In this document: positions 29,201 through 64,000 of the stretch, piece by piece | How positions within the stretch are numbered: the stretch's first letter is position 1 | Layout: each line of letters begins with the position of its first letter | DNA from: Marsupella aquatica | Taxonomy: Eukaryota > Plantae > Marchantiophyta | NCBI GenBank assembly: GCA_973895155.1 | Contig: OZ316898.1 | Location: 17,474,752 to 17,538,751 of the forward strand | Reading direction: 5' to 3' | DNA length: 64,000 bases | Made by a program: the position numbers and the translations under genes | Notes under the pieces: model-generated | What the model was told of the DNA's origin: nothing | The model's input: the letters and a program-made list of their open reading frames with translations, nothing else | The model's database searches: none

Positions 29201-30685
29201 AAAAAGTAAGGGTGGCAAAAAAGAGGAGCACACCCAGAGAAGAGAACCAATACCAGGCACACCCAACCAGATGGCCAAAAGAGGGGGCACATCAGAGAAA
29301 GGAGGGGTGGCCGGGAGAGAAACCATATCCAACTACACCCTAAAATAGCTAATCTGCTAGAATGGAAAAGGACCGAGTGAACCTAACCGGCAAAGAGACC
29401 TGGGAGACCAGCATGAACCAGAACAGGGAAAGCGCCATTCCTCCTACCACCGGCTGCAAGACCCTGGCAAAAACCCCTTGAATCACACCGCCACCTCCCC
29501 CCATCCCCTAGTAGCCAACTCGCCAAAGAGAGTGTGAGACAGAGCAGTGCAGCATCACCCACCGCCCGTCCGTGAGTAAGATGCTCCGCAGCTGGGAGTT
29601 CACACCCCTGAGAATCAAAGAAGCGGAGCGGGAAATGTAACCAGGCCAATAAATCATTAGAGACAGAACATGATTTCGGACCAATTGAGAAGTATTTCCG
29701 CACATAGAGAAGGGTGTTTTTCATTCTCGCCAATTTGTTGAAATGACACAAATAGCGATCCAAAATTCCGCAATATCCCAATTTAGTTCCATTTTTGTGT
29801 CGTAGATGGGATTTCATTGAAGGGGTGAGCAATGCCCACAGACTACCTCATTATATATATTTAAACTTCCGAAATGTATTGTTTGTTGTTGACAACGTTC
29901 AACTTTGTTTCCAACATGGAAAATCCTTATTTTCCGTCAACTTGTACACATGGAAAATAGTTTTGCTTCCAAACCCAAACACATAAGGAAAGCAACTAGC
30001 GATACTCGTATCGCAAACCACATTCATCATTTGAGAATATACTCCAAAAGTAGCTCAACCTCTCCTTTCAAAAACTTTACTATCAACAGTTTGAAAAGTT
30101 ACATCATAGTTGCCCAAAATTTACTACACAGTTCAACGCAGTTGATCTACTTTTAACTAGAAAGTAAAGTGACAAAATCATGGTAACCATTCCGCCTAAC
30201 CATCGTGAAAAGTGATTGTGAATCAGCAAAACTATGGTACATAACTCCAAAGCACAATATGTGCACCTTTTACAGGACCAATTTGAAAAAAATCACCCCA
30301 AAATGCAAAAAGCAATACTTGTATCGCATCTAGAATCAAATTGTCTCAATGGAGCCCTGATTAAAGCAACCCACAGTACAATATCCCAAATAGAATAAAA
30401 ATTGCATCCACCCCAAAGGAAACACTTAACATGTACATTAATTTTGTCGTTAAAACACTAATTTGAACCTTTTTTAATCACCCAAGCTATTTTGTCGTGT
30501 AGCGGCTGACCAGTCAGAAGTAGCCACATGGCTCAGGGTCACCAAAAACTATAAATACATCAACGCCGACTAAGTTTTTTGCACCATTTTGTTTCACAAA
30601 GTTATTCGTCTATTTGAGTTTTTTGAGCGTAAGAGCATTTTGTGACAGGAATGCCCAACAGTATAGAGTTAGTTATACGTTAACC

Positions 30686-33600
30686 ATGTCTGAAGAGTGG
30701 TCGCCCTCCAGTTCAGTTGAGTCCTCCCCCAATGGTGGTCCTCATGGTCGTCGATGTTTGCCAAATCATATTCGCAAATTACTCCCAGTTTCTCAACAGA
30801 GTGTACCCAAAATATCGGACTTTGATTCTGATGGAAGTTCTGAACCAGAACCTGGGGCTTACTATGTGTCACGTAGTAAACCTGATAAACGTCGGCTCCT
30901 AAACATTCCCTCCCCTCGGATGCAAAAGCTTTCTATCCAAGGTTTAGGTTCTAGATGTCGATTTAGACCGTCTATCCCTGGGTATGGTGAAGGAATCAAG
31001 AAGACGATACGCGTATCGGCAACGAGATTGGGATCTCCAATTGACGCTTCAAGTTTCCAACAGGTGCCAGAGGAGAGAAGAGAAGGTCGAATGCAAACAG
31101 CGATACACGTATCGCCATTTGCATTGCCTTTGAGGGAATCAGTTTTGCCACAGGTGCAGCGAAGGATATTTCTTGGGACAGACGTGAGAACGCAAGGTAC
31201 AATACACACAATGATACGTGGATTGCCGTCTGCATTGCGTCGAAGAGAACTGGTTCCCAGCAACAGCAAAGACAACGGACTACAAAGTCCAGAATCTGCG
31301 CAATCTCAAATTGCAGTGGGGAGATGTGTACAACGATTATTCGATGCTTCTCCAATCAATGGACCAATGGCAGCCGCTCGTGTACACAATACAAGTTTGG
31401 GGAACAATCAAGACACACCATTGATGACCGCCAGACCCACTTCTGCAACTAGGAGTGTTTCTAGAGAGCCAATTAGACATCTTCAAGTTGCTAGACGAGG
31501 CCTCACTAGTTTTAGCGGAGTCCGAAATATGTACAGAGAACCAAGAAGTCCAATAGTGTTTTCTGATGAGTCAAGTGAGGAGGAAGATGTTGAGGAAAAT
31601 AGACAGTCGCAAGCCATTGCACAAGTTGTATCAGAATGTTTGGAAACAAATGAGGGCGAGAGTAGCTATAGTCATCTCTTTAGTGATCTGAGAAATCCCA
31701 CTCTATCTTCAGATGATAGTAGCTCAAAAGATACTAATGGCTCTATTCCGGAAGTTGCAGAGAGACAAGAGAGTGAAAATTCACTCCATGGATTTCACAG
31801 TATGGAGAAACAAAAGGAGCTTAGCAAGAAAGTGAGAGACAAGCTTGTGAGGAAAGATAATGTTACAAATCAAAATTTAAAGACAAAAAAAATGAAAGAA
31901 GTTTTTAAGTACCCATGTTGTGATAATTTGTGTTTGAGAAATTTTGGTCTAGATTTAGTGACAAAACACCGGACCTTCTATTATGGCTTATCATCGACCG
32001 AGAAGAACATACTTCTAAGGGGCTGTTTGAAAAGTGGGCACGGTGGTCCAACCGGTTACATTGTTGACGGGAGATCTTTTTGTCGAGAAGGTTTCAAGAA
32101 ATTATTTTCTGTTGGAAATAATCGGCTGCAGAGAATCTCAAGGAATACGTTTTCTCGTATTCAAAATGACACATTTTGCAAGGAAAAATCGGTTACTCAT
32201 CTTTCACTAGTTCAATGGTGGAATGAGTTTTTCATGTCAAATGTTGAAAGTCTTCCAAACAAGGACATCTTCCACTTACCAGACAATTGGACGAAAGCTG
32301 AAGTATTTGATGCTTTCAAGATTGATACTATGGTGCGGAAGGAAACCGAGATCACATATTCTTGGTTTGTTCGCATTTGGAACAAAGAGTTCCCCAGGGT
32401 GCGTATTCCAAAAAAGAGTCGCTTCTCCACATGCGGTCCTTGCACAGAGTTCAAAGCACTTCGTGACAAAGCAGTACTTGAAGCAGAAAAACGTAAGTTG
32501 TGTCTACCTTTAAATAAGTAAAGGATTGATGTTAAGTACTACATTATTTACTTGTTTGGTTTGGTGATGCGGTTATTATTGACAAAAACATTGACGTTCA
32601 TTTGACAGGAAAATATTCAACACTTTTGAACCAACATCGGAAAGCACAAGGAGTTGAGAGGGAGAAATTAGCAAAGCACCGAAGCAAGTGCTATAAGAGT
32701 CCAGAAAAATATTTGGGGATCTGCATTGATGGTATGGATCAAAAAAGACTGAGTTGCCACATTTCACTAGGTGCCCCAAAAACATGGACGAGAAGTACTT
32801 TATTCCGGTACATGTGGTGGGTTGTTTGGTGTTCAATGGACATTTGACATCAAAAGTGTTTTTGAATTATCCAAACATTCACAATGACACCAACTTGACA
32901 GTGCATGTGATCCAACATATTTTAAATAGTTGGGAAGGTCCACTCCCTCCAGTGTTGTATCTACAACTTGATAATACCCCTCGAGAAAATAAAAATAAAT
33001 TTCTCATGGCATATTTGAATATGCTTGTTGAGATGAGGGTTTTCCAAAAGATCAAAGTTGGTTTTCTTTTGGTTGGACATACCCATGATCAGATTGACCA
33101 AATGTTCAGGAAGTTCTCCTCAAAATTAAATAAGCAAAAAGCTTTCGGGTGGATAGTCTTGCAGACATTCTTTGTCAAGGATTCGTACAATCCAAAGGCT
33201 GAGATAATTTTTGTTGAAGAGGTTGCTGATTTCAAGAAGTTTGTGTCGGATAAAGACCAACCCAATGACATGGGAGGTATTGGGCATGTTTTGTGTCCTC
33301 TACATGGTATTAGTGGTCAAAAGCAATTTAGGATGAAGAGGGTTGTAGGAGAGAATGGAGGAACTTCAACTTTGTTTCACGCAAAGCATCTTTCTAGCAC
33401 TCAAAGTTGGGGAGAAGCAGTGGAGTTCCTTAGATACATCCCCACATCTACCATGTGGGTTGCTGCACAAATGGCATTGAAATCTACAACCGGAGCAACA
33501 GTGGAGAATGATGAACATGATGACGGAGGCAATGGAGACGAGCGTCTTCTCTACAACCATGTTGCAGTCCTGGAGAAATATCGCAAATCAATTGAAGATG

Positions 33601-34031
33601 GATTCAATTACTTTGATGATGAGGATAAACTTTGGTGGCTCCGTTTCTTTGACAACCAGAAAGAAGTGATTAAACACCACTTGAAGGCAGGACAATGGGT
33701 TTTTGATTGGACGTGGCCAAAATCAAATATTGGAGTAGAGACTCCAAGAAATGCACTTCCCCCACAAATAGAGCCAGCCTTGCTAGATAACATTGCAGGC
33801 GCAACAACAGTCATGTACTCTGGAACAAGGAAGAAGAAAGCAGTCGAGGGAGACTTCAAAGATCTTGAAGTGAACACTAAATATGCAATGATTTGCGTGG
33901 CTGCATATAGGGATCCAAACAGCAGACCATTTTGGAGATATGTTTATCAAGGTTCTCAATCATTAATAGAAAGCCTTGATAAATCCTTAATAGTGTTATT
34001 GCACACATCTAATCTAACAACATATCATTGA
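30686..34031 (+). pseudogene. Sola/DUF7869-like DDD transposase, copy A (frameshifted, C-terminus deleted)
   Basis: Exon 1 30686-32492, GT-AG intron 32493-32608. Motifs: CCDNLCL, RFSTCGPC, IDGMDQ, LYLQLDN..ENKN, FLLVGHTHDQIDQMF. One A is missing from the run at about 32741-32746. Homology to copy B stops after RPFW (about 33934). Confidence 0.82.
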
Positions 34032-37000
34032 GTTCCCCATCGTCCGGTGTTCTAGGTAGCTTTTCTTCAATGTTTGGCTCATTTTCTTCAGGCTCCTCCT
34101 GGTCATCAGTATCCACATAAATGCTAGTACCAATGACTCCCAACTGCCCACCAACCGGAGGCTGAACTTCTTGTCCCTGGCCACCTTCACCGGACACTTG
34201 TGCTTCATCGTATAGAGTCCAAACAGATTCCAATGTCATAATCCGACTCCTCAAAAATTCTACCTGAGTCTCACCTTTGTCAACAGCACACCCATTCCGA
34301 GAGTTGAGAAGTGCAGCCACCAATGTTGACCCAGTTCCACAACAAAGGTCTGCCACCCAGTCCCCTTTCTCACTGAAATGATTAACAAACCAATCACCCA
34401 ATGCAATTGGTTTTTGGTAAGGGTTTACAATAAACCCTAATGGACTCACAGACTTTGTAGTAACACAGGGAACTTTCACAATGTTCACCCTGGACTCATC
34501 AGGAGCAAAATTGTACATCTCCTTCTTTCGAACTCCATCCTCACTGTAATAACCAATTGACCAGTTCTCAAAGGCCCAAGCTAGCCTTGGCCCAGAAGGG
34601 TGCTCATGGATGTTTGTCTTCTCCCATATACCGGCCTCAACTCCGCAATTGCAAACCTTCTCAAGTGCGCTCATAACGCTATTGGTCTGCTGCAAGGAAT
34701 GGATCACAACAAACCTCCACATTGGAGAGGTGGTGATTTTAGCAAAATTAGTAACCATCTCATTTACATCCTGTTCAGTGAAAGGTTCCTCGTCAAACTG
34801 AGAACCAGGGGCATTGAAACCATATGGGATGTCTGCAATTGCCAAAGTGAAATGTTTTGGCTCTAGAAAGGTTTCTAGTTTCCGAATATCTCCAACATGA
34901 AGAGAATATGAGAATGCGTCTCCATTTGCATTCTTCCATTGATGTTGAGATGAAGCTGTAGCAATTGATGAGATATTCAGTCTCCGATTGTGTTTTTCAA
35001 TTGCTTCAAGAACATAGTTCTTGAAGACGTAGGGGATGTCACATGAAGGAATCTCGACCTCCACGACCTCGTCAAATTCATTTCCAGAAATGACTTTTTT
35101 CTTCCTCTTTGAACTGATTTTGAACTGCACATTAAACAAAACTCTTTGTAAGATTTCCAAACACAAATTTTGAATGCCACCAGTGATACAAGTAACACTA
35201 CCTGCATTCAATATCTCAAATGTTTGCTTTGAATATATATAACTGAAAACAAAAGGCCATAAGGACATTGTGCTTACTGCTTCTGTGAGCTTTTCGCACC
35301 AAGTTAAAAGGACTTTTACATCGGTTTCCTGGGGAAACATTCCCGGCATGTTGCCCAATCTTTTTGATCAGAAATCTGCAGGAACAATTTCTTTACCTTT
35401 GCCAACTTCTTAAGTGTCTCACCTTCTTTGAACATTTGTTCTAGAGTGATTTTCTTTCCAATTACTCTGTTTAGGAGTCGCTTCACATGCTCCTGATTGG
35501 AAAGCCCCTGGAGAGCTCTGAAGACCCTCAAATTGAAATGCCCAAAGAGCTTGTTCATTTTGATTTCACTTGCACTCAGCGGTTTAGGTTTAATTAGCTT
35601 TTGATTTACCTTTTGATGTTGCTGACGGCTGCTTGGCCACGATTGGCTTTGTTTGACCAAGGATCTCAAACTTTTGCCACATAGAGAAAATTTTATCTTG
35701 GAGCTCCCAAATCTCCCCAGATCGAAAGGCAATCTGAAATGTAGGGTCATGTTTGGCCATTGAGTCATGAACACCTGGAGTGTAATCAAGCATACATTCC
35801 TTACAACAAGCTTCTCGCACCTCTTTAGTTGACCCCACATTCATTTCCATGAAAATATTGTGACAGGCACGAACTTTGTCAATCGATGTCATGGTTTTCC
35901 GGTACTCCTGGTCGTAGTTATGCTGGAAAGCCAGCATCCTGATCTCATGTCTCGTTAGACCAGAGTAAACCCATGCCTCAATCTCACCGTACACTTGCTT
36001 TCCATACATTTTGAAAAGTTCAGCCTTTGCACAAGCTCCATGATTACCGCCAATCACTCGATACTTCCATACCCTAGATTTAGTAATCTCCCACTCATGA
36101 ATTGTGGGACAATCTGTTGGATCAACTACAACAACAAATGGAGCCGTGAAGTTGGAAGGGTTTTTCATGAGCAACATTTTGATGTTCTCTACATGTAGCC
36201 GATCTACAGGTCTAACTAAAGTTGAATTCTCACCCTCATCTTCAAAAATAAGATTATTGACATGCAGAAGCACACTGGTCCTCTGGACTCTGCGTTCAAG
36301 CATGAACTTTGCAAGTTCAGCCTTGATGGCATCTGTCTCAAATGAAGCCAACGGCGTCTCTTCTTCCTCATCTCCCTGAAAAATAACATGGCTTGCAATG
36401 AATTTTAAGAAGAATTCAAAATGCAAACCATTTTCATTATTTCAATGCAATGCGAGATACAAGTATCGCTCCCAACATTCATTTTTGCTAGACAAATAAA
36501 CTTACCAGGGGAATGCTAACGACAGCTGAGGTTGGACCTGAGGTAAGGGGTAATCGTTCTTCGGATTGATGCATTGACACAACTGGAGTGCTTATTGCAC
36601 CACTTGAATCTGCAGCTAGAGCTACTCCTGTGCCTCCAATCCAACCTGTCCTCTTCTTCTTTGCAAGTGAAGTTGATGGCGATGGAACCTCTGCCTCGAT
36701 AGGTACCAATTCATCCACAACTCCCCTTCCACGACCTCTTCCACGACCACGACCTCGACCACGACCAACACTTGTAGTAGCGCCTGGGCTTGCCTCTACA
36801 GATTGAGGTGCTTCACCTAGAATCACTCTCATGGTAGCTTCTACTTGGGAATTCCCTTTCCCATGTCCCCTGCTCCCACTAGCACAATCAACTCCTTTTG
36901 CAACTGAAGATGCGCCACTCCCGCTAATGGTTGGCTTCCTTACTTTGATCCTTCGTGTGGGTTTAAACTCTTCACCCACGAGTCTCTTATACTCTTTCTG

Positions 37001-37498
37001 GACAAACGGCAGCATCAAAGGACTCGAATCATCCACAACATTAGCAACCCACTCAGGCTTGAAGATCTCCATCTCAATTGTACTCGCGACTTCCTTCACA
37101 ATAGGGTCTTCGGGAAATTTGTCTAATGTTGAGAGATCATACAAATCCATGTCCACGACAAGGGCCACAACACCCTTGCTTCCACACATTGTGAGGAAGC
37201 TCAATCCAATAGCGACAGATTTTTCCTTCCCATGACCCTTCTTAAAGTCACATGCGGCAACCCCAATTATTGGACCAAAGGAGAGTGTAATCTTCTCTGT
37301 TTTCTTCACTTGAACCCAAAGAACGGGTGTCTCCCAGTCAGCTGCTTCTTTGGACAGCATTCGAGTATCCCGAAAGTACCAAGGTCTCCTCACAAACTTT
37401 TGTTCATCACAAATATCTTCTGTCGTCCAAATCACATTACACAAAGTTGTCATGAGGTGCTCGGTCTCAGCAGACCCTGTCCTTGCACTTCCTTCCAT
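34009..37498 (-). pseudogene. Unknown domain + ParB/Srx-like domain + beta-class N6A/N4C DNA methyltransferase, copy A (3 exons)
   Basis: Exons 37498-36506, 36375-35278, 35124-34009 with phase-0 GT-AG introns. ParB-like: VRPVDRLHVENIK..APFVVVV..YRVIGGNH..LAFQHN. MTase: HVGD, LAIADIPYG (motif IV), NPYQKP..SEKGDWVADLCCGTGSTLVAA (motifs X-I). Frameshifts at about 35592 (+1) and 35342 (-1). Confidence 0.85.
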
Positions 37499-40400
37499 TG
37501 TTTTCCTTTGGCAGATCAAATTTGAGATCTACACTGCTTGATCAATCCCATGAGCGATACAAGTATCGCGCTTTGCTTTCTTCTAAATACGGCATCCAAG
37601 TTGCTTTCTATTGGGTCCAAGAACCTTGAGCAGGGGCGTCTGTTGGGAGCTGCTATCGATTCTCATGCGGTTCTAATCCAACAAGGGTCAAGGCTATCGT
37701 TGTCCATCTGCACAATGACATGTAGTGCCGGTGAGTCAAATCTGAAGCTCAGGAAGCTCAAAAAATGAAGAAAGGCCGACGATACTGGCGATCAATGTAA
37801 ACTATCAGTTTGATCACTTAATCTGCTTCTCAAAACTCAAAATCGCAGAAGAATCGCAAATGCCCGCAGCGAGGCAAAAGAGCAACTTACAAAACAATTG
37901 GAACAAAAGGAAAGATAGATTGACAGACATGACAAGCTGCAACTCCTTCTCTGCCGGTGGTGACTATGATCAACTCACTGTCCTCTCCTTCGTCGCCCTT
38001 TGGCTGCATCAATTTGAGCGAGTACTATGTCATGATTGTTATTGTGGGAATGGCCAAATTGACAGTGATGAATTCTAAGTCCTTCAGACTTGCAAGTCTT
38101 CCTCCGCTCTTTGGGAATGTTGCCATTGAGCAGAGAGAGAAGAACAAGAGAACAAGCTTTGCTTTCTTAACAAGCCAACACCTTACAAACCCCCAAGAGG
38201 ATCCATGAATCCACGATCGGGCTACAGATACAAGATTGCAGGCTCTAATGGAGTCTCTGTTTCTGATGTTTTAACTGGGATTACTGAATTCAGCTTAATT
38301 CTGAGAACAACATGACTCAATCCCAAGAGAGATACAAGCACCGCAATTTGCTTTCGGATTGGGCCAACACTTTCCAATCCATCCGCCGATTCCTCTTTAG
38401 ATGACAAAACACAAAGACTCCTACTCGAAGCAATACGACTATCTCATATGTCTTTCACAAGCCACACGGAATGCCTCAAAAACTATTTGTGCAAAACCAA
38501 CTAAGGGAAATGACTCAAGAAGCAGACCAAATCCTTTTCACAGTACAAACCATGGTTCGCACTGTCTTCATTTGCGCCGCCTCTAGAACTTGTTCTGGTG
38601 CTACCTACAGGGTAAAACTATTTCTTTTTGAATCAGCCAGGCCACACCACCTCCTCAGTCTCCTATCTAGCCAAACAATGCTCCTTTCCAAAATCTCTCA
38701 CACGAGCTCTCACAAAGACAAGAAAAAATGGGAAACATTGTATGGGAGAGGATATAGACACGAGGCCGTCACTCTTTGGGCACTCAAAAGATTGTCGAGC
38801 CCAACTTTTGTTGGGCACATTTTTGCTTGTAAGCGGACGGAACAGAGTATTTGTGTTTGTTTAGGTGGGGTTTTGTCAGGTCCACCTTAGAGGTCACGAG
38901 TGACCCCGTCCAATGATCTTTGCAGCGCAGTCCGTCCTAAATCTACACTACTCAATCCAAAGAGTGATACAAGTATCGCTATTGGCTTTCGGATCCGACC
39001 AACAACTACCCAAGAGAAAATAAGGGCCCCAACATAATATGAAGAACTGCGAGATGAGCAGCAGACGGCTTTACAATCTTCAAGAGACAGAATCTAAACC
39101 ATGATTGAAGTATTTTCACTCTTGCACCATGAGACTAATTGAGTTGGCTCAATGCACCAAGCGATACCTGTATTGCTGAGGGTTTGAAACTTAGGTTTGA
39201 ATGCAACTTACGATACAAGTATCGCAAGTTGCTTTCTACAAAGCTGATTACGATACGAGTATCACAGTTTGCTTTGGAAAGTGGAAAGCTTACTCTTAAG
39301 ACCAGAATGCGCATCTGTATGGAGAGGAGGTTTTCTTTGGGTTGGGTGAGAGCTTGATTGTGAAAGAGGACTTGAAAAAATGAAACTTCTTTCCATGAGC
39401 GGGCAGTCATATTTATACTTTTGGAGGTAGCTATGGTTAATTTCTAGCTTAACCCTAGTTAAACCTAACCATAGTTAGAGCCTACTGCGCGGTTATGCAC
39501 AGTTTCACCATTTCTGTAATTTCTGATAACCAAAGAATTTACAAATGCAAAGGTCGATACCCGTATCGGTGTTTGCATTCCTCCTAAGCATGGATGACTA
39601 TTTTTCTGGAATGCACAATTTGTATCGGGTTTTACATGCCTTAGAAAAAAAATTGATCATGAAAAACGAGAAGGGTGGTCACCCTTCTCGATAGGTCCGA
39701 CATCATGTTACAGGCCCGATAAAGCAAAGAATCCAATTACCCGGAACCCGCGGAGGAGCGATTGAAACTCCCAGTCATCTCCGGCACACCCATGAAAAGG
39801 CGCCAAGGGGAAGCAATCCCCTCCATCCGTGTACCAATACACACACCTCCAAATGGTTGAGAACCTCCGCATTGGAATACTGATCCCAATGTAACAAAGG
39901 AGGAGAAGGTGCTCGGCAAACAAATAATCTATTCCAGGGTTTCTACGTTCACCACCGAGTTGTAGAGAGCCCCACAAATAGATTGCTGAAACCATGTGCT
40001 CCATAGAATGAGGAGAGCCAAATCCGCCAGGCTGCAAAGAGTTGAAAGCATTGGGAGCAGGGGGACAGACATTGCCCAAGGTGGGTAGATAATTGTTGAA
40101 GGGAATTGACGGAGGGGACGATTCCCCAAAGAGAGAATGAGCCACCGGTGGTCCAGGTGCGGGAGTTCAGAGCAGGACTGGGTGACCGAGAGAAAATGAT
40201 CCCCACCGGCCGGGGAGGGCAGAAACCAACAACCATTGAGAACAGATATACTCCAGCCAGATAGCCGAATGATGCAGCATTAAGGGGAGAGGAATGGGTA
40301 TCATTCCCAGTCAAGATCCGTACCAGAAGGCCAGACATATCTACTGGATAGGAAAACTCAGCCAACCGATTGTATATCCATTCCAACCCTATCATATGCA

Positions 40401-40900
40401 ACTCAATTACCTATGAGTACTACCTAAAAAGTTCTAACACTATGCCCAGATTTACCGGGATGCGAGAAGAAGTAAGAGCTCACAAATATAACTATCCGAG
40501 AGGCGGATAACCCTGAGGCAGCCAATACCCGGAAAAGCCGAAGGGGAGCAGAGGAACCGTGTTAGGCCATAGTATGTTGCTAGGAGGGAGAAGACAAATG
40601 TTATCAGCCGATCGAAAGGTATCTGGACACAAAGAAGAAACCGTGGTAGAAAGTGCCCACAAAGAGGGACTAAACAAATGGTATTTACAATAGAAACAAA
40701 AATTAGTCAAAATAAAAGTGACGCATATGTTAGGTCTCCCTGGAACGGCACAGAAATTGACATGGAGGAACGGCCAAGCCGGAGCAAGGGAGACTGGGGG
40801 GAAGGGAAAAAGAGAAATATAGGGACCAGTCAGCAGGATACAAAAGAGAGAGGAGCATGGGGATGAGTGGGTACTAATAGGAGAGAATTTCCAACTGAGG

Positions 40901-44840: not shown

Positions 44841-45041
44841 TGTCCATTGCGGGAAAATTCACTACTAATATGTCGGGGAATGAGGGTGTCCTTATTGATC
44901 ATCATGCTGCTTAGAGGATGCTCCCGAGAAAGTGTCATATTCTGAGCTGGAGGAGTTGCTATCTCTCCCCGTGCCGTCCTCCATTGATGTGGACTCATCA
45001 TGAGAGGAGTAACCACTTGATGGGTCACCCAGGACCTGGTT

Positions 45042-46317: not shown

Positions 46318-46631
46318 TGAAGAAACTGACGAGCGCAGCTTCCCATAATTTACACAGCAAGAATGCAGAATGAACAGTGAATTGGTCCTTAAGAGAGTGG
46401 TTGGCGAGAGAATGCGCCGCACCAGATCAGTGAATACTAATCGGACCGTAAGTAAGATTAACCCTAAATCTAACGGTAATCACACATATACAGGCCCCCC
46501 CAGATAACACCTAAGCGAAGGGGGAACAGACAAAGGAACAGCAAGTGGCGTATGTACACCGGATGAACGTCGTAAACTTAACACCCCCTCCCGTCCGGTA
46601 ATCCATCAAATGCACAGAGCAAGTGGGGAGA

Positions 46632-54021: not shown

Positions 54022-54570
54022 ATGGTTGCGTCGGAGAATCTAATCGTTGCAAAGATGGGATCCGTTTTAGCCCACGAGCGTAGGAAATATATTCGAGGAA
54101 AAGTGCCCGGTGTGAAATGCGGAAGTTTGTTGAATGGACTTCCCGATCAACTCGTTGAATCTCACATTTGGCCCCTCCTAGCCTTGTCTTGCACACAAGA
54201 TGAACACCTTGGCCTTGACCTAAAACTTCTACCAGAAGAACGACTGACTCAAATGAGAACAATCATTTGTCTTGGAGCCACCTCAAAGAAATGGAACCAT
54301 CTTGTTGTTGGTACACAATTTTGGGCGCTATTGAAATATGCAGTCCATGAGATCAATGACATAAACAAAATGCTCGCAAGCATTCCTAATGCCGACCTTC
54401 TCTCAAACATACATATTGCTAGGGTCTTCCGAGAGGAAACTCATTTCCTCCCTCCCATAGATATGCTTGGGTGCTTTTCATATGAGCAGTTAGATCAGTT
54501 TTGTAGAGTTTGGATAAATCTTGGAGAAAGTAGGAAGCGGACAATTCTTGCATGGCATGGACGAGTCTGA
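54022..54570 (+). CDS. Transposon cargo ORF, F-box-like (182 aa)
   Basis: LNGLPDQLVESHIWPLL...LGATSKKWNHLV resembles an F-box motif with an insertion. Open ATG-to-stop frame. Confidence 0.45.
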   Translation: MVASENLIVAKMGSVLAHERRKYIRGKVPGVKCGSLLNGLPDQLVESHIWPLLALSCTQDEHLGLDLKLLPEERLTQMRTIICLGATSKKWNHLVVGTQFWALLKYAVHEINDINKMLASIPNADLLSNIHIARVFREETHFLPPIDMLGCFSYEQLDQFCRVWINLGESRKRTILAWHGRV

Positions 54571-54885
54571 GTGGATGAGGCATTGCTGCGAACATCCGAT
54601 AAATTTATCGCACTCCTCATTCCTCTAGTCGATTTTGGGTGCTCTAAGGTTTGCTCGAGAAGAGCTTGTAAAGAAACACTTTGAATGTAATTGACTTTGC
54701 CTCCCCTCACTTCGGGTTGTGTGGTCCAGAGTGTATTTGTTTGCGCCTCTTCGGACGATTAGCTGACAAGTGCATTGGCTTCACAGCCCGTTATACAAGG
54801 TACTGTAAAGTTGGATGAAACTTGTAGAATTGTAATTAGTATGTTCTCCAAAATTTATTCCTGATTTCTATTCGGTGATCAGGCC

Positions 54886-55598
54886 ATGCTCGAGCGACGC
54901 ATTTTTGTACCCTACCCGGATCCTCCAGAATGGGGGAATGGAGCCATGCTGGACCAGCTAAGGAGGCTGGATGAGTCACTAATTTTAAAGATATGCAGGC
55001 TGGTAGTAAAACCATTTTACCATAACACATTTCACTTCTACGTAGATCAGGTAGGGGGAGAAATTTATATTCGGTGGGATAGATATGTTGGATTTACTAG
55101 AAGAGTTATCCTACTCTTTCTGAAAACCGGTGCAGTAAGACGTTTTATACTCCACTGCTGTCATGTTGTGAAGGGCAATCCTGCTAATGAGCCATAATTC
55201 TATGCCGACAATAGACGTAGAGCATTCGATGAGATTCAAGATGTGATTGACGAGCTGGACAATCCTCTTGCCACCGAGTTTTTTATTGACACTGGTGGGA
55301 AACTATATTCATACAAGATTTGTCAACTTCCCCCCAGCCGGTCTGTGCGCTCTTTAACTTGATCTATGTAAGTTGCCTGTGGACGAACGTCCTTGCCAAT
55401 GGTGAGATCTGTCCATGCTGCACAAATGCTTGTTGTGACATTCCGTCACGCCGGTATTCAGTAGCAGTAGTGAATCCTGAGACTGGTGAAGTTGATTTCC
55501 ATTGGCTGTGGGCTTATGATCATCGCGTCACTCATATTCCCCAATGGCCCAAGAAGCGGATCGAACGCTTTGCTCTGGCGAGGTTCAACTATGATTAG
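54886..55598 (+). pseudogene. Transposon cargo ORF of unknown function, Cys-rich C-terminus, disrupted
   Basis: 54886-55197 reads through a TAA into plausible coding sequence, then frameshifts into 55320-55598 (..SCLWTNVLANGEICPCC..). Confidence 0.35.
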
Positions 55599-55823
55599 GG
55601 TTTAGGTTTAGGGGTTAAGGTTTGGATTTAGGGTTCCGTAGCTGATTCTTTGACCTATACACTCGGCCGTCAATTTAAAGAAGGCTCACTTTTGCGATAA
55701 TTTTATCGGTCATTTGCATTGCGGGTCTCTTTGTCCTTGTGTGATGAGATGTCGTGTCCACATGTGTTGTGAGATAATTTTATCGCTCTTTGCATTGGAA
55801 TTTGTTTATTTGCAGACTTTGCC

Positions 55824-58800
55824 ATGGTTGCTAGTGGAAAGAGTGGATCTGCTGAGGCAGAAAGTCTCATGACAAGCCTCACCAATGCAATTTGGACGAG
55901 CGAAGACATTTGTGAAGAGGTCAAGTGTATCAAGAAGTCATGGTACTTCCGTGACGCCAGATTACAGTCCACGGGTTTTGAAGATTGTGCTACCCCAATC
56001 CTTTGGGTCCAGTTGCAAAAATCGGCGAAGGTTAATGTTTCGTATGGCCCTATCATTGTTGTTGCCGTCATCGAGTTCATGGTTGGCCACGGGGAGGGAA
56101 AAGTGTTGACAGAGGGCCTTAGTTTCTTGACAATGTGTGGGCGCAAGGGTTTCACATCTCTCATTGTTACTCTCGATAACTTTGATGAGAAATCGATGGA
56201 CAGTTATCCAGAAGATCCCCTTGTTGCGGAAGTTCGGGCAGCAAGAGAGATGAATGTTATGGGTTCGGCTTGGATCGGCCAGTATGTGCAAGATTGTGAT
56301 GCCATCATGCTTCCAAGGGTGAACGCAGAGTACAAGAGACTTGTGGGTGAAGAGTTCAAACCTGTCCGCAAAATTGTTTTCAAGAAACCAGGTTCAAGTG
56401 GCAGCGGTGGTTCTAATGCCAATAAAATGTCGGGGCGAAAAGAACCATTGCAATCCTCTACACATATTGACGTGGACGAATCTACAACTTCTGGTCTGGT
56501 TTCGGGAAGTGGAAGAGGGAAAGGGAGAGGTAGCGGCAGGGGAGATGCCGCGGGAACCTCTGACGGTGGGAAGAAGAGCCAGGAAATTGGCGGTAGTGGG
56601 AGAGGCCGAGGCAACCATCACGGACCATCCGTTAAACCAAGCGAAAGTAAAGGATCCGAGGGATCCGGGCCATCTGGTTCTGGACTTAGCACAAAGAGGA
56701 AGAGGACTGGTTGGATAGAGAAGGTGGCTGCAGAAGTAGATAGAGCTCCGTCAATTCCATCAGTTCCAGTCACGGTTCCTGTGGCGCCATTGGTAAGTAC
56801 TACGTCATTGTACTGTTTAACAAATACGAAATCCGATAAAAATCTCGCTGTTTATTTCCTGAATTGCGGATTGTGGAGTTATGTTGAACAAATGCGAACT
56901 CCGATAAAAATCTCGCAGTTTCTTTCCTTAATTGAATTTGCAATGCTTTTGTAGGCTGATCAGGAGGAGGAGACGGCTCTTTCGATGTATGAGACGGATG
57001 CGATCAAGGTAGAGCTCAATCTTCTGATGCAACGAAGGGTGCAAAGGACAACTGTGCTTCTGCATGTCGATAATCTCATATTTGATGAGGAGGGGGATTT
57101 GTCAACTTTGATTAGACCAGTGGATAGATTGCATGTGGAAAATATCAAGATACTCCTCATGAAAAACCCCACCAACTTCAGTGCCCCGTTCGTGCTGTGT
57201 GTGGATCCGAAGGATTGTCCCACAACTGCAGATTGGGACATCCTGAAGTCAAGGGTATGGAAGTATAGAATTATTGGAGGGAATCATGATGCTCGGGCAA
57301 AGTCCAAGTTGTTTAAAATGTACGGGAAGCAAATATATGGTGAGCTGGAAGCTTGGGTTTACGCTGGGCTTACGAGATCCGAGGTCCAAAAGTTAGGCTT
57401 CCAGCATAACTATGACCAGGAGTATCGGAAGAACATGACTAAAATTGACCAAGTTCGCGCTTGTCACAATATTTTCCTTGAAATGGGTGTGGGCTCGACT
57501 AAAGATGTCCGCGAAGCATGTTGTCAAGAATGCATGATGGAGTACACGCCAAGAGTTCGTGACTCCATGGCCAAACATGATCCGGCTTTCCAAATTGCTT
57601 TCCGAACAGGTGAAATTTGGGATCTTCAGGAGCAGATTTTCCAGATGTGGGAGAAAGATATTGTCTTAGGACAACCCAAAAAAATTGTGGCAACGACGAA
57701 TGCAAAGGGAAAGGTAAAACCTTTGACGGTAAGGGAGATTAAAATGAATAAACTTGCTGGTGACCTCAACTTAAATTCATTTCGAGGTCTCCAAGGACTG
57801 TCAAATAAGGAGCATGTGAAGCGTCTCTTGAATAGGGTTATCGGGAAGGTGATCACTTTGGATCAAATGCACAAGGAAGGTGAGAAGTTGAAAAAACTTG
57901 CCAAGGTGAAGAAACTATTTTTGCAGATATCTGGTCAGCCAGATTGGGCAACATGCAGAGAAATGTTTCCCAACGAAACAAATGTCTCGGTCCTTGGCAT
58001 ATGGGCGGAGAAATTGAGTGACGCGGTAAGCATTCCTCTCACAGCATGCTCTATTGCGGGATTTTTATCGGCTTTAGCATTCCTTTTGTTGGTTTCTAAG
58101 CGATTGCATCTATCAGCTAGCGTGCTCCATCGCAAGATTTTTATCGGCTTTAGCATTCCTTTGTTGGTTTCGAAGCGATTGCATCTATTAGCTAGCGTGC
58201 TCCATTGCGAGATTTTTATCGGCTTTAGCATTCCTTTGTTGGTTTCTAAGCGATTCCATCTATCGGCTAGCGTGCTCCATCGCGAGATTTTTATCGGCTT
58301 TAGCATTCATCTCACTCTATTCTAACTGTAGATGTGTCTGACATTTTTACAACTGAAGATTAATTCAAAAAGGAAAAGCAAAGTGGTTCCGGCTGTCACT
58401 TATAATTCTGCAGGGAGGTTATTGTTCCCTCAGCTGAAATCCCTTATGTGTTTAAGAATTTTGTGCTTGCTGCAATCGATAAGTACAATCGGCTGAGGTC
58501 CTTAGACGAGGGCACAGCAGAAGCGTTTGAACAAACATGGAAAAATGCAGACGGGGATTCTTTTCCCTACTATCTCCATGTTGGTGATGTTCAAAGTTTG
58601 GATTCTTTTGTTCAGCCAAGGGCTTACACCCTTGCGGTTGTAGATATTCCGTATGGTTTTAATGCTCCTGGTTTGGAGTTTGATGAAGTGGCCTTCACAG
58701 AAAAGGACATTTTAGACATGTTGACAAGTTTCTCAAAGATGACGACCGCTAAGTAGTGGAGGTTTGTTGTGATCCATTCACTACAACAAACGCATATGGT

Positions 58801-59464
58801 GATGTCTGCACTGGAGAGTGTATGCAACTGTGGGGTCGAGGCTGGAATCTGGGAGAAGACTAACATTCATGAGCGTTCCGCTGGAGCTCGATTGGCGTGG
58901 GGTTTTGAGAACTGGTCGATAGGTTTCTATAGCGAGGAAGGCATTCGGAACATGGACATGTACAATTTCCAACCGAATGAGTCTCGCGTCAATATCATCA
59001 AGGTTCCATGTGTAACCAAGAAGTCCGTTGATCCGTTGGGATTTGTTGTGAACCCATATCATAAGCCTGTTGGTTTGGGGGCTTGGTTTGTTTCCCATTT
59101 CTCTGAGAAAGAGGATTGGGTTATTGATCTTTGTTGTGGAACCGGATTGACATTAGCTGCTACGCTCCTCAATTCTCGCCAGGGTTGTGCTGTTGATAAG
59201 AGTTCTGCGCAGATTGATTTTATGAAATCCCGGATCATGATTCTGGAGTCAAACTGGAATTTATATGAAGAATCCCAGATTGAAGGGCACGGTGTTGAAG
59301 GTCATGAGATTCAACCACCAATTGCAGGCCAATTGGGTGTTCTCGGGACATCGACTTACGTAGTTGAGGTCGTGAAGGAGACCGAAGAGGAACAAGAAGA
59401 AACTGAGGAAGAGCCTCCCAGAACACCAAATGAGGATGATCTCAACAACATGTTATTAGATTAG
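55824..59464 (+). pseudogene. Unknown domain + ParB/Srx-like domain + beta-class N6A/N4C DNA methyltransferase, copy B
   Basis: Exons 55824-56792, 56955-58025 and about 58332/58353-59464; introns at the same positions as in A. Motifs: YRIIGGNH, LAVVDIPYG, NPYHKP, WVIDLCCGTG. -1 frameshift at about 58412 and in-frame TAG at 58754-58756. Confidence 0.85.
58055..58310. repeat. About 75-bp tandem repeat (3+ copies) in MTase intron 2 of copy B
   Basis: The unit GAGATTTTTATCGGCTTTAGCATTCCTTTGTTGGTTTCTAAGCGATTGCATCTATCAGCTAGCGTGCTCCATCGC recurs. Confidence 0.85.
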
Positions 59465-59795
59465 TTGCGTGTGCTCGTTAGGATAATGTCAATCACCAAT
59501 GGAGTTGTCGATAAATTTATCGGATTCTGTATTCCATGAGGAAGAACCTTTGTCATATTTATTAATGCGATAAATTTATTGGACTTTGCATATATCGGAG
59601 TGTCGCGATGTTCTAGCTGGGGGAATGGAGTTGTCGATAATCTTATCGGACTTAGCATTGTATGCTCTAACTGGTTTGTCATTGCAATTATTTCCAAAAA
59701 AAAGATATCATTATAGCTGCGGAGTACATAGTCCCAGAACGATAACCACTATACATATTCATGGGAACGATAACCATTACAACTTAAACCTGCAA

Positions 59796-62700
59796 CTAGC
59801 TTCGACTATCAACGACTACAGTCCCCATTGCATTTTGAATGATTCGTCTTGTTTGTATAGGGAGAGTACTATTTGCCAATAACGCAAAGTTATACGCATA
59901 AACGGCAGTTTTTGCTAGGGATAATTCATCCTCCAGTACTTTGCTAGACGAAGCCTCTTTCTCCGGATAATATCTACCTTCAATTGCAGACTCTTCCTCC
60001 GAATCCATTGCATACCAAGTGATTTTAATCCGCTCCGGGATGTCGTTAATTCTTGTGAGAATCTCAGTCACTTTTGCCATCCAGAATGGTCTTCCCTTGG
60101 GATCCTGATGGGCTGCTACACATATCATTGCAAATTTAGTATTCACCTCTAGATCCTTGAAGTCTCCAATTTCCATGACTTTTCTTCGACTTCCGGAATA
60201 CATGACTATCCTCACACCCGCTACTTTATCAACCAAGCTAGGTTCCATTGTTGCTTCCGTAGGATTACTCGGAAGTTCTCTCTGTACGTTTACCTTGGGC
60301 CAACTCCAATCAAAACTCCATTGTGCAGGTTTCAGGTGGTGCTGAATCACTTCTTTTTGTTTGTCAAAAAGACGACCCCACCATAGACGATCTTCGTCGT
60401 CAAAGTAATTGAATCCATCTTCAATTGCTCTTCGATATTTTGGAAGAGTTGACAAATAACTTTGAGCCGCCCGCTCATCTTGTTCCTCGGCATCATTCTC
60501 TTGCTCTTCATTGTCTCCTGTCGCTCTCGTGGCCGACTTCAATGCCAATTGTGGTGCGACCCACATTTGTGGAATGTACCGAACAAAATCCACCATCTCC
60601 CCCCAATCGGTTGTCGTTGAAAGATGTTTGGCATGGAATACGGACCGAGCACTTCCATCTTCGAGTACTCTAGTAATCCAAAATTGTTTTTGAGCACTTA
60701 TGCCGTGGAGAGTATGTAGAACCTGACCATCCATATCCTTGTCATTTGCTTGATCCTTGTCTGACACAAATTTCTTGAAATTGGCAACCTCGTCGACAAA
60801 AAATATCTTTGCCGTAGGATTGTAGGATTCCTCTATGATTGCTGAAAGAGTGTCCAACCGGAAAGCTTTCCGCTTGTTCAATTTTGAAGAAAACTTGCTA
60901 AACATTTGATCAATTTGATCATGGGTGTGCCCCACCAATAGGAAACCAACCTTTATTTTCCGGAAAACACCTATCTCCACCAACATATTCAAATATGCCA
61001 TAAGATATTTATTCTTGTTTTCCCGAGCTGTGTTATCAAGCTGGAGGTAAAGCACTGGAGGGAGCAGACCTTCCCAGGTATTCAGAATATGCTGGATAAC
61101 GTGGATGGTCAGGTTGCTATCATTGTGAATATTTGGATAGTTCAAAAAAACATTTGAACTTAATTGTTTGTTGAAGATCAAACAACCCACTACGTGTACG
61201 GGGATGAAATACTTTTCATCCATATTGTTTGGACACCGAATGAAATGAGGTAACTCTGTCTTCTTTTGATCCATTCCATCAATACAGATGCCCAAATATT
61301 TCTCCGGACTCTTGTAACATTTGCTCCGGTGCTTTGCTAACTTCTCCCTCTCGACTGCTTGTGCCTTCCGATGCTCGTTTAGCAATGTTGAGAATTTTCC
61401 TACAATAATAAAAATGTTTAGGACAAAACATGATAACCGCAATGTTGAACCCTGACAGCGATAAATTTATCGGGTTCAGTATTCAAACACGAGACCATAA
61501 TGATAAACCCTGACAACGATAAATTTATCGGGTTCAGTATTCAAACACAAGACCATAATGAAAAACTGTGACAGCGATAAATTTATCAGGTTCAGTATTC
61601 AAACTGTTCAAACGATATATTCACTCACATGGCCAAAGAAGAAGCACATGAATACTCAACCCGATAAAATTATCGGGAGTAACACACAGGTTTAGAAACT
61701 TACTCTTTTCTGCTTTGAGTGTTGCCTTGTCACGGAGTGCTTTGAATTCAGTACACGGGGCGCAGGTGGAGAAACGACTCCTTTTGGGGATGCGCACGCG
61801 AGGAAACTCCTTGTTCCAAATGCGAACAAACCACCAATATGTCATGCCTTGTTCTTGGCGCATTAGAGTTTCGGACTGGAAGGCATCAAAAACTTCTGTT
61901 TTTGTCCAATTGTCAGGTAAATGAAAGATATCCTTGTTGGGGAGACTCTCGACATTTGTGGAAAAAAAATCATTGGACGAGACGAAGATGTGCGGGTGAT
62001 TTTTCTCGACAAACGTACTGTACCGATCTGTATCCGAGAAAACATGTTTTGCGAGATTTTTTGGAGACGATTATTTCCTAGTGAAAATAATTTCTTAAAA
62101 CCACTCCGACAAAAGGATCTACCGCTAACTGAGTAACCACTTGCACCAGCATGCCCACCCTTCACACATCCTCTTAGAAGGACGTTCTTCTCTGGGTAGG
62201 ATAGCCCATAGTAATAAGTGCGTTGTTTCGTCACGGCTAGCAGACCCAAATTCCTCAGACAGTAATTATCACAACACGAATACTTATGAATTTCTCTCAT
62301 TTTGTTTCTATTCAATTCGTCATTTATCACATTGTCTTTCCTAGTAATTCGGTCCCTATCTTTTTTACTAGGCTCATTTGACTTCTCTACAGCCTGAAAT
62401 CCGTTCATAACTTTGGCATTTTTGGGTCCTTCAGGTGCCTCGCGAATAGATGCATCACTCTCTGCTGAGCTACTATCCTCTATAGATCTCCTTGACGCAT
62501 TTAGAGGGGCACTGAATAGACGACTATAACTATTCTCTTCGACAGCTCCTTCTAAACATTCAGACACAACTTGTGCTATTATATCGGATTCTCTATCTCC
62601 TTCCTCATTTTCGTCCTCCGATGCACTCGACTCATCTGAAAACACAATTGGACTCCGTGGCTCTCTATACATAACCCGAACGCCACTAAGACCTCTCCTC

Positions 62701-63336
62701 AATACTTGGAGCCTGGAACCAATGACAGTCCGCCCTTGAGAACTTGGAGATTTTGGATTTGCATGTGCAGTCCCAACGACTCCGCGAGCTGCTGGAAAAT
62801 GGAGCACTTGTTCACCACGATTCCCATGGACCATTCGAGAAAGGGCCGAGTCTGGACTTCGCAGTCCGATTCCCTCGCTTGCTCGCACATCCAATCCAGG
62901 CAATGCAAAGACCGATCGCCGTATCGGTCTTTGTATTTCTGTGTCCCGATCCTCACCCGGAGACTGAAAGATCCATCGTTGAATGTGGCGACTTGAATGC
63001 CGACTGTGATACGCGTATCGGTCGCCGGATACCCTCTCCATAACCCGGGATGGATGGCCTAAAGCGACGTCTCGGACCTAAACCTAGGATTGAAAGTTTC
63101 TCATTTCTTGGCGATGGAACGCTCAAGAGACGACACTTCTCAGGTTTACTAGGCGACACATAGTAAGCACTGGGCTCAGGATCAGAACTTGCATCAGAAT
63201 CTGAGTCAGAGATTTTGGGCACTATTTGCTGTGAGAGAGGTAGAGCTTTAAGTATGCGACTTGGCAAACAGCGAGCGACAAGATTAGGAGAGGATTCAAC
63301 TGAACTGGAAGGTGAATCTGTGTCTGATTGAGACAT
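59796..63336 (-). pseudogene. Sola/DUF7869-like DDD transposase, copy B
   Basis: Exon 1 63336-61704 has several frameshifts. Intron 61703-61400. Exon 2 61399-59796 is open: IDGMDQKKTELPHF, LYLQLDNTARENKN, VGHTHDQIDQMFS, and C-terminal PFWMAKV..IKITWY. Confidence 0.85.
61445..61605. repeat. About 58-bp tandem repeat (3 copies) in the transposase intron of copy B
   Basis: TGACAGCGATAAATTTATCGGGTTCAGTATTCAAAC units with the palindrome at 61459, 61517 and about 61575. Confidence 0.85.
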
Positions 63337-63622
63337 GGCTATCCGAGACACTATGGGGCTTTGCATTCCTCCCGCAATCAGGGAAAATGAAAGGCTCAAC
63401 GGACAGAATGTTGCTCCAAGAACACAACTCCCAAAACTCTACTCTCGATAATGATGCCAAAAACTTATCGGCGGTGGCCCTTTTATAGTGTCTGTTGAGG
63501 GGTTGGCCCACGTGTCCACTTTTGATTGGCTGTCACCCTAAACGACAAAATAGCAAAAAAGGGTATATTTCTTGGATTTCCAATTTCATTCTCACACGTG
63601 CATCATGGCAAAATTATATAGT

Positions 63623-63900
63623 TTTGAAATTGAAGCGATAAATTTATCTGATGTTGGTATTGCAAAAGTGGTTCCTTCATATGGAAGTTGCAATTTGAAA
63701 TTGAAGCGATAAATTTATCTGATGTTGGTATTGCAAAAGTGGTTCCTTCATATGGAAGTTGCAATTTGAAATTGAAGCGATAAATTTATCTGATGTTGGT
63801 ATTGCAAAAGTGGTTCCTTCATATGGAAGTTGCAATTTTGAAATTGAAGCGATAAATTTATCTGATGTTGGTATTGCAAAGAGTTTTCTTCATATGGATA
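63623..63900. repeat. About 71-bp tandem repeat (4 copies) upstream of transposase B
   Basis: TTTGAAATTGAAGCGATAAATTTATCTGATGTTGGTATTGCAAAAGTGGTTCCTTCATATGGAAGTTGCAA units. Confidence 0.9.
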
Positions 63901-64000
63901 GAAATTTTGAAATTTAACCGATGAACTGAAGGATCTTAGTATTGTCAACTAGTATTTTTGTCGCCCGTAGTTTTCGCGATAATTTTATCGGATTGCGCAT

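Follow-up and report, generated by a model that had tools for sequence, protein, structure and literature searches.

Two related DNA transposons occur close together in a 64,000-nucleotide stretch of the liverwort Marsupella aquatica (GenBank assembly GCA_973895155.1, contig OZ316898.1, positions 17,474,752 to 17,538,751 of the forward strand; hereafter the window, in which positions are counted from the first base), and each is studded with copies of a short palindrome. Which molecule do these palindromes address, and why do two neighbouring subfamilies carry different versions? Element A is a Sola1-like DNA transposon of 10,043 bp (29667..39709, plus strand), delimited by its terminal inverted repeats (TIRs), its target-site duplication (TSD), Pfam domains and blocks of homology with element B. 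Element B (52588..64000, minus strand) is a diverged subfamily, inverted with respect to A, and continues beyond the end of the window. In each element a DUF7869 transposase gene is convergent with one collinear gene for a ParB-like and DNA-methylase-like (MTase-like) protein. We report that the palindromes are specific to their elements and that their selective maintenance is supported by the evidence given below; we propose, with about even confidence, that a protein encoded by the element docks on them, for which the ParB-like/methylase-like accessory protein would be the most likely reader.

Counts and architecture of the palindromes

The A-type core is CGATAC-NN-GTATCG and the B-type core is CGATAA-NN-TTATCG, and matches to both were counted at up to one mismatch. 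The A-type core, CGATACNNGTATCG, has 13 matches (0.05 expected from dinucleotide shuffles), 11 of them in 30000-39568 and two, at 52739 and 63007, in B. The B-type core, CGATAAWWTTATCG, has 20 matches (0.03 expected), all in B, between 53034 and 63990. The 42.5 kb of the window outside A and B contain no site of either type, where shuffles expect 0.03-0.05. These scans recovered every A-site and B-site coordinate of the initial annotation, which had been made from the sequence alone, and they agree with its observation that the motifs are absent from intervening elements and host DNA, since neither 1-29666 nor 39710-52587 holds a site. Its figure of more than 20 B sites comes to 20 at this threshold, and about a third of them derive from three tandem arrays, with units of 58, 71 and 75 bp, each of which amplifies one site; A has no such array.

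An unbiased count of all palindromes with 5- or 6-nt arms and spacers of 0-4 nt returned the CGATAx type as the sole over-represented palindrome in each element, and in 200 shuffles of A no palindrome with 6-nt arms exceeded two copies. The half-sites behave similarly: CGATAA occurs 48 times in B and not once in A, and CGATAC has a density of 2.0 per kb in A versus 0.2-0.5 per kb elsewhere. The sites are mostly noncoding, as previously held. Coding-like DNA holds two of the 11 A sites (P=0.01) and none of the 15 independent B-type sites (P=4e-5), which leaves 9/11 and 15/15 outside it. They are found in five settings, namely upstream of the transposase gene, in the exon gaps of both genes, between the 3' ends of the genes (B only), in the leader, and about 150 bp from the TIR; the leader sites follow a TATA-like box that is directed inward from the terminus.

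When the A sites were aligned with their flanks and symmetrised, the consensus obtained was gAATGCAa-N3/4-(G)CGATAC-NN-GTATCG(C)-N3/4-tTGCATTc. Taken as a whole, the site measures about 36-38 bp and forms a bipartite inverted repeat, GAATG-N6/7-CGAxxx-NN-xxxTCG-N6/7-CATTC, and the conserved part reaches about 11 bp further on each side than the 14-bp core described initially. Of the 22 A half-sites, 20-22 have AA at positions -10/-9, a conservation equal to that of the core (AA makes up 10% of element dinucleotides), and bases in the linker and in the 2-nt spacer vary almost at random. From the centre of the outer box to that of the inner box the distance is about 11 bp, which is one helix turn. 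B has the same outer box in a weaker and often one-sided form (16 of 28 flanks vs 11.5% expected, P=7e-9). The two subfamilies differ in the inner triplet, TAC in A and TAA in B, and have the outer box and CGA/TCG in common, as does the clade as a whole. The initial annotation had described shared CGATA/TATCG arms around a private core: the variable core is borne out, in the form of the inner triplet, but the shared part has to be corrected to CGA/TCG together with the outer GAATG/CATTC box.

Apart from their sites, the noncoding regions of A and B cannot be aligned, yet both are full of sites. The succession of conserved, variable and again conserved columns suggests constraint on particular contacts rather than recent copying of one unit. 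Neighbouring sites are at least 40 bp apart in the symmetric families, a minimum that fits a footprint of about 38 bp, and spacings of 33-38 bp are found only in L011, a related locus whose sites have one outer box. Mismatches in the arms are concentrated on the four CpG positions (10 of 11 independent mismatches, P=1e-4), and seven are C-to-T or G-to-A changes. Such a pattern is typical of deamination at methylated CpG, although a relaxed constraint on the outer bases would look similar. We also considered an RNA hairpin or cruciform, which is unlikely because the 2-nt spacer is too short for a loop and the linkers are mostly noncomplementary.

Site series, relics and polarity

A HMMER search with the ParB exon against 1.8 billion representative proteins identified 142 homologues. 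Close relatives, with 49-66% identity, were obtained from metagenome and Logan contigs via a close-relative alignment (A3); distant homologues have about 30% identity. The close relatives keep the same site frame with other inner triplets (GAC, TCC/TGT and hybrids). Loci L009 and L010 carry CGAGAC-NN-GTCTCG within flanks GAATGnGAGGAG...CTCCTCnCATTC, and hybrid sites are found in L009 (CGATAC-NN-GTCTCG, 5 copies) and in L013 (CGAGAC-GG-GTATCG, 3 copies). L011 has 20 copies of the asymmetric site CGATCC-AA-ACATCG with a GAATAC box on one side only, and L001 has two copies of TGATAA-TA-TTATCR. B's own intron variants are likewise hybrids, of CGATAA and CGAGAT. Three short contigs of close relatives (L002, L003 and L012) contain no site. 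The initial annotation had suggested that motif type be compared with protein phylogeny; the comparison was made, and the site types follow the tree of the ParB exon, which groups A with B, L009 with L010 and L013, and L002 with L011 and L012 (for L006 and L007, tblastn pieces of one exon query were concatenated). The 20 sites of L011 (L011:79-4860) are nonpalindromic; the recognition unit may be the half-site, and sites can become oriented.

Palindromes are also found beside more distant homologues. The two Chara braunii loci, L004 and L014, carry TTATAG-N2-CTATAA in 24 (up to one mismatch) and 15 (exact) copies, respectively. A Logan contig (L005) has nine copies of TCAAGC-N2-GCTTGA, and assembly GCA_046195345.1 contributes L006, with 18 copies of GTATGC-N2-GCATAC, and L007, with six of CCATGCG-N-CGCATGG. 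In L016, an intron of a PARP14-like gene that is apparently animal, GCTGGA-N2-TCCAGC is present 20 times in a 39-bp array; within L016:9941-19170 the 20 units of this array, GCTGGA-WW-TCCAGC with AA or TT as spacer, lie about 1.5 kb downstream of the annotated gene end. The ParB-like open reading frame (ORF) of L016 is intronic, and no methylase or Sola1 transposase was found within 10 kb of it. The sites of L016 and of Chara are largely in tandem arrays, and arrays of inverted repeats are seen in 8 of the 10 related loci longer than 2.5 kb; L015 gave no convincing palindrome. These distant palindromes, mostly of the 6-N2-6 form with changing letters, are what would be expected of one protein fold with changing specificity. 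A second Sola1-like copy at L006:18075-22076 lies next to the first and has a palindrome of its own, CCATGA-N3-TCATGG, in 10 copies with a 3-nt spacer; up to the end of the locus it shows no ParB gene.

The transposase gene of A consists of ORFs at 30614-32521 and 32754-34031 (plus strand), and its ParB-like/MTase-like gene runs from 37519 down to 34009 on the minus strand. Two A-type sites are subterminal and upstream of the transposase gene (30000..30326): 30000 is perfect, and 30313 has a CpG changed to CpA. The sites at 31005 and 31101 (31005..31114) are both perfect and stand in frame in the transposase N-terminal ORF, where they encode TIRVS and AIHVS. Site 36455..36468 occupies the noncoding stretch that separates the N-terminal exon from the ParB exon; it starts with A in this assembly and with C, which makes the site perfect, in runs X1 and X2 (four runs were compared, as contigs only). 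Just upstream of the ParB-MTase coding start is site 37555..37568, the positional counterpart of 55695 and 55772 in B. The leader, downstream of a TATA-like box at about 39410 on the minus strand, contains sites 38965, 39162, 39211 and 39251 (38965..39264), and 39211 forms a near-perfect 30-bp palindrome. The last site, 39555..39568, is TIR-proximal, about 150 bp from the end, and is embedded in AATGCAAA...TTTGCATT.

In B the ParB-MTase gene is at 55824-59464 (plus strand) and the transposase gene runs from 63399 down to 59796 (minus strand). An A-type relic, CGATACGTGCATCG, is found about 150 bp from the TIR (52739..52752), followed by five B-type sites (53034, 53127, 53203, 53259 and 53352; 53034..53365) in the leader that follows a TATA-like box at about 52893. 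Sites 54597, 55695 and 55772 (54597..55785) precede the ParB-MTase coding region. Two hybrid sites, CGATAAAAATCTCG, each made of a CGATAA half and a CGAGAT half (56834..56915), lie in the gap that leads up to the ParB exon, and the gap from the ParB exon to the MTase exon contains the 75-bp tandem array (58043..58308), with 3.5 units and a variant site, CGAGATTTTTATCG or CGCAAGATTTTTATCG, in each. Between the 3' ends of both genes are 59509, 59568 (CpG to TpG) and 59635 (59509..59648). The gap between the two transposase ORFs holds the 58-bp tandem array with sites 61459, 61517 and 61575, together with site 61662 (61441..61675). Two further A-type relics, 62913 (CGATCGCCGTATCG, two mismatches) and 63007 (TGATACGCGTATCG), are located in the transposase N-terminal coding region (62913..63020), and the 71-bp tandem array upstream of the transposase gene has four CGATAAATTTATCT sites (63636-63863) beside a perfect site at 63977 (63623..63990).

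Two other short motifs were observed near the element ends. A second palindrome common to A and B, TTAACCATGGTTAA-like, occurs at 39430-39495 (minus strand) and 52844-52886, in two copies just upstream of the inward TATA-like box (tataaata at about 39412 in A, tatataaa at about 52893 in B); this region may be the promoter of the ParB-MTase gene, with a factor site of its own. The TIRs hold a CGAGAA/TGAGAA hexamer about 20 bp from the tip (29686-29692, 39684-39690 and 52607-52620), which resembles the CGAGAC/CGAGAT half-sites of relatives, and position 52607 of B scores as a full site with two mismatches.

The A-type sites of B, first noticed at 52739 and 63007, proved to be positionally homologous to sites in A, and 62913 is added here as a third. 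Site 52739 corresponds to 39555 of A, both being about 150 bp from the TIR and both within AATGCA...TGCATT. In the transposase N-terminal ORF, 63007 corresponds to 31005 and 62913 to 31101, with a spacing between partners of 94 bp in B and 96 bp in A. All three are slightly decayed. The initial annotation had placed 63007 in coding sequence, which is correct, and had overlooked that 31005 and 31101 of A are likewise in frame in the transposase ORF. The in-frame sites (31005-31114 and 62913-63020) encode x-I-(R/H)-(V/R)-S, and the DNA site may be what conserves this peptide; the surrounding N-terminal region of the transposase has 46% identity with many gaps.

Constrained contexts, beside the end and within an ORF, have kept the A-type in B, and free noncoding DNA carries only the B-type, much of it in arrays. 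Since the relics occupy homologous positions and the relatives L009 and L013 also have CGATAC halves, the A-type is likely, though not proven, to be ancestral. The TAA core of L001, which has no settled place in the tree, weakens this polarity. An element-wide switch from the A-type motif had been suggested initially: the relics agree with it, but the A and B sites that can be aligned are too few to show in-situ conversion of every site.

The candidate reader and its rivals

The accessory gene is composed of an N-terminal domain of no known family, an RG-rich linker, a ParB-like exon and a DNA-methylase-like exon, and the exons were searched separately rather than as a joined spliced model. 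The ParB-like exon of A encodes 278 amino acids (35590..36426, minus strand; counterpart in B 56985-57719), of which residues 48-178 form a ParB/Srx N-domain and residues 178-265 a four-helix part. Its AF2 model has a pLDDT (predicted local distance difference test) of 84.6. Residues 48-178 match ParB 7bnk best (Z 11.1, root-mean-square deviation 2.0 A over 94 residues), followed by Noc, KorB, PadC and sulfiredoxin, and Foldseek local alignments of the exon cover 200-246 columns of two-domain ParB/Noc/KorB chains. The predicted ParB N-domain fold is solid, and DNA binding by the modelled protein is plausible. The exon has evolved under purifying selection, as pN is 0.16 and pS 0.71 between A and B. 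Pfam ParBc did not match it, and searches of Pfam, PDB sequences and the Atlas with the ParB exon, the N-terminal domain and the transposase N-terminus returned no DNA-binding domain. The same searches assigned the N-terminal domain, the most diverged part of the protein (42% identity between A and B), to no known family.

The MTase-like exon of A (34009..35358, minus strand) matches Pfam N6_N4_Mtase with an E-value of 1.7e-7, in a match covering motif I. Motif I is DLCCGTGS in A (34344), DLCCGTGL in B (59132) and DLC(S/A)GSGT in distant members. The catalytic DPPY was not found in any frame, and the aligned position reads D(I/V/F)PYGF in 9 of the 9 members compared (DIPYGF at 34833 in A; counterpart at 58643 in B). 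Both D(I/V/F)PYGF and DLCxGxG are conserved family-wide, and the former is probably a conserved variant of motif IV of the predicted methylase. Run X5 includes a contig of another organism, 234 nt long, in which 34853-34702 is followed by 35665-35594, going back 964 nt; it may be a rearranged copy or an artefact.

If the accessory protein is the reader, it would act as a dimer in which each monomer reads two boxes one helical turn apart, and the private inner triplet would allow the protein of one subfamily to find its own copies and not those of its cousins. Bound protein could mark or regulate the whole element, given sites near promoters, in introns, between genes and beside the TIR. Candidate actions are local DNA modification by the methylase-like domain, countering of silencing, autoregulation, or assembly of the ends for transposition; a role of this kind is suggested by analogy with VANC, KorB and TnpA. 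New site types would arise in noncoding DNA, partly via hybrid sites and tandem duplication, and sites in constrained positions (coding, or beside the TIR) would keep the old type and decay. The initial annotation had left the choice of binder between the ParB-MTase and the transposase and had invoked loading in the manner of ParB on parS. The ParB-like protein is the candidate that we favour, at the even confidence given above, because ParB-like genes of Chara and L016 have private palindromes where no Sola1 transposase was detected and because a similar arrangement has been reported for Plavaka elements; the transposase remains a rival.

Several observations weigh against a ParB-like reader. 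The CTP box of ParB, GERRxRA, is replaced by GGNHGACAK in A, GGNHDARAK in B and GGNH(G/S/T)A.AK in relatives (broadly, GGNHGA(R/C)AK), so that a clamp driven by CTP (cytidine triphosphate) is not supported; the helices that follow the N-domain have no clear helix-turn-helix match either, and the loading proposed initially is not upheld. Modelled alone (pLDDT 92.9), the four-helix part reaches a best Z of 4.5, against assorted winged-helix proteins, and has no Foldseek match. L008, a compact relative, lacks a repeated palindrome. Hybrid sites and the asymmetric sites of L011 indicate that the code is not strict, and both copies in the window appear old, with CpG-decayed sites and, in B, a frameshift. 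Within A, 9 of 11 sites are at most 1.5 kb from an end, and conservation is highest at the TIR-proximal site; both would fit a transposase site. A Sola1-like transposase accompanies the ParB gene in all loci except L004, L014 and L016, so co-occurrence cannot separate the two candidate readers.

Binding by the Sola1-like transposase is less likely; what speaks for it is the skew of the sites toward the ends, together with the conservation of the TIR-proximal site. The sites would then resemble the repeats in the subterminal DNA of Ac/Ds, or the sites of TnpA/TnpD in En/Spm, and serve in the recognition and pairing of ends, with internal sites as by-products or enhancers of transposition. A and B have in common the site about 150 bp from the TIR, which retains the A-type in B; the terminal 170 bp of A, including this site, are present on many contigs in two other organisms (C and D). 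The resemblance of the TIR hexamer CGAGAA to a half-site, the transposase homologue beside nearly every palindrome locus, and the palindrome of the neighbouring Sola1 copy in L006 point in the same direction. However, a transposase reader does not readily account for sites deep inside the elements, in introns and between genes (36455 and 37555 in A; 54597-61662 in B), and searches of the transposase ORFs returned no recognised DNA-binding domain. In Chara and in L016, palindromes and a ParB-like gene occur with no detectable Sola1 transposase, and the ParB-like genes of Plavaka elements, which belong to an unrelated superfamily, are also flanked by arrays of inverted repeats (10.1101/2025.02.11.637652).

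It is improbable that the sites are read by a host factor, such as a transcription factor (GATA-type or other) or part of the silencing machinery, for which the elements would accumulate enhancers or decoys. The cores of A and B do contain inverted GATA/TATC, sites cluster near both putative promoters, and no element protein has a demonstrated DNA-binding domain; nevertheless, relatives replace GATA with GAGA, GATC or other palindromes while the frame is kept, which fits poorly with one conserved host factor, the 42.5 kb of host DNA and other transposable elements are free of sites, and a dyad of 36-38 bp far exceeds the usual plant cis-element. A functionless by-product of repeat amplification, by tandem duplication and gene conversion, is very improbable: the three arrays of B each multiply one site and the sites of L016 and Chara are largely in arrays, but A has 11 dispersed sites and no array, with flanks unrelated beyond the conserved boxes, three unrelated repeat units of B carry the same site, the conserved-variable-conserved pattern is unlike recent copying, and homologous positions have kept their sites despite about 30% nucleotide divergence.

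Returning to the ParB-like/methylase-like protein as reader, we offer a more specific proposal, which in its full form is tentative and rather unlikely. The system may be a re-addressable self-recognition module, in which two separate modules of the protein contact the invariant GAATG box and the evolvable triplet of the 38-bp dyad, a switch of the triplet via hybrid sites allows escape from control by other subfamilies or the host, and a prokaryote-type N6-methyladenine (6mA) or N4-methylcytosine (4mC) mark on or beside the element's own copies would oppose silencing or license transposition.

Element structure and known systems

The assignment of A and B as Sola1-like is tentative: DUF7869 is the only Pfam match of the transposase (E-values 6e-46 and 6e-49 for the long ORFs of A and B), and the connection to Sola1 comes from the published description of Sola1-1_Ec32 (PMC12477816). 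The left TIR of A, AACATGATTTCGGACCAATTGAGAAG (29667..29692, plus strand), is paired with the right TIR at 39684-39709; the repeat is 26 bp long and reads AACATGATKTCGGACC...GAGAAG, and B begins at 52588 with the same TIR (52588-52613). Read directly from the sequence, the TSD of A is ACAG on both sides (29663..29666 and 39710-39713), in line with the 4-bp TSD of Sola1. An AWWT/AWDT target preference is called a Sola1 hallmark in PMC3845634, which cites Bao et al. 2009; ACAG at A does not match this target, and as A is the single complete copy, a target preference cannot be established from it. A and B are alignable only in coding blocks (65-73% nucleotide identity) and at one terminus, where 39637-39709 of A aligns with 52659-52588 of B.

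Other repeats are found elsewhere in the window. A young long terminal repeat (LTR) retrotransposon lies between A and B (46318-51999), with 274-bp LTRs (46318 and 51726) that are 99% identical and a 1489-amino-acid ORF on the minus strand (47194-51663); none of the palindromes occurs inside it. A further large DNA transposon may be bounded by the inverted repeats 622-883 and 14388-14650, which are 87-94% complementary and separated by 13.5 kb; direct repeats (1338-1479 and 4728-4869, 99%) sit between them. Positions 23919-25262 consist of tandem repeats whose units measure 111-127 bp (families D1, D2, D7 and D8), and a 74-nt inverted match joins 20096-20169 to 24825-24898.

Proteins other than the transposase that bind many motifs in their own element are familiar from maize En/Spm, whose TnpA recognises many 12-bp subterminal motifs near both ends, some of them in inverted pairs, and affects the promoter, methylation and the pairing of ends. 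In contrast to the system described here, TnpA is an unrelated protein of the CACTA superfamily and its motifs are confined to the subterminal regions. We know of no subfamily series of this kind for En/Spm.

The closest bacterial parallels are KorB with its OB operators in RK2 (PDB 8qa8 and 8qa9), ParB with parS, and Noc with NBS (7ol9), in each of which a dimer of the ParB family binds a palindrome of 13-16 bp; KorB has about a dozen copies, near and far from promoters. A and B likewise hold a palindrome of 14-16 bp in many copies, comparable with the roughly 16 bp of parS. The present system differs from these in lacking GERRxRA, in its eukaryotic setting with introns, and in having outer boxes and a methylase-like domain. 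No ParA-type ATPase was noticed among the long ORFs scanned with Pfam, in which no search was aimed specifically at ParA.

Self-recognition by a transposon has been shown experimentally in few systems, the main one being VANC in Arabidopsis. The anti-silencing protein VANC of VANDAL elements binds family motifs, and the resulting loss of methylation was shown experimentally (Hosaka et al. 2017, PMC5735166; PMC10398659). The likeness consists in a transposon-encoded accessory protein and in short motifs that lie in the noncoding DNA of its own family (introns and upstream regions), often in tandem, and differ between relatives; VANC and its targets appear to co-evolve. Unlike the candidate reader proposed here, VANC has no kinship with ParB or methylases, it recognises nonpalindromic words of 8-9 bp in one orientation, and it belongs to Mutator-like elements. 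No VANC-type protein was found in the window elements, as their long ORFs yield only DUF7869 and N6_N4_Mtase in Pfam and their TSD and TIRs are not Mutator-like.

ParB-like genes in transposons were first noted by Iyer, Abhiman and Aravind in 2011, according to the citation in PMC12477816. Giant Plavaka transposons of red algae have the accessory gene PAG3, which encodes ParB together with a 2-oxoglutarate (2OG) oxygenase (10.1101/2025.02.11.637652), and Sola1-1_Ec32 of Ectocarpus has a ParB-methyltransferase gene on the strand opposite to the transposase (PMC12477816). The authors of these 2025 studies propose that the ParB-like protein binds and modifies its own transposon (10.1101/2025.02.11.637652; PMC12477816). 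As in those elements, A and B combine a ParB-like protein and a DNA-modifying domain beside the transposase of a DNA transposon, and their layout is that of Sola1-1_Ec32. The algal papers differ in that they describe tandem arrays of inverted repeats only for PAG3 and give no site architecture, subfamily series or land-plant case; here the sites are bipartite, are dispersed over all of the element and differ between close subfamilies. The literature searched contained no land-plant paper on ParB-like transposon genes. For red and brown algae it has already been suggested in print that ParB-like proteins of transposons recognise inverted repeats in the element that encodes them, and what is new here is the bipartite site with its invariant outer box, the graded series of triplets with hybrids, the positional relics and the family-wide DxPY motif.

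The neighbouring subfamilies A and B differ by one base per half-site (C to A), and a site of about 38 bp, its variants and the protein sequences together make binding testable. If the proposed reading is true, an address system in the style of bacterial ParB/parS would have been re-used by eukaryotic transposons in a land plant.

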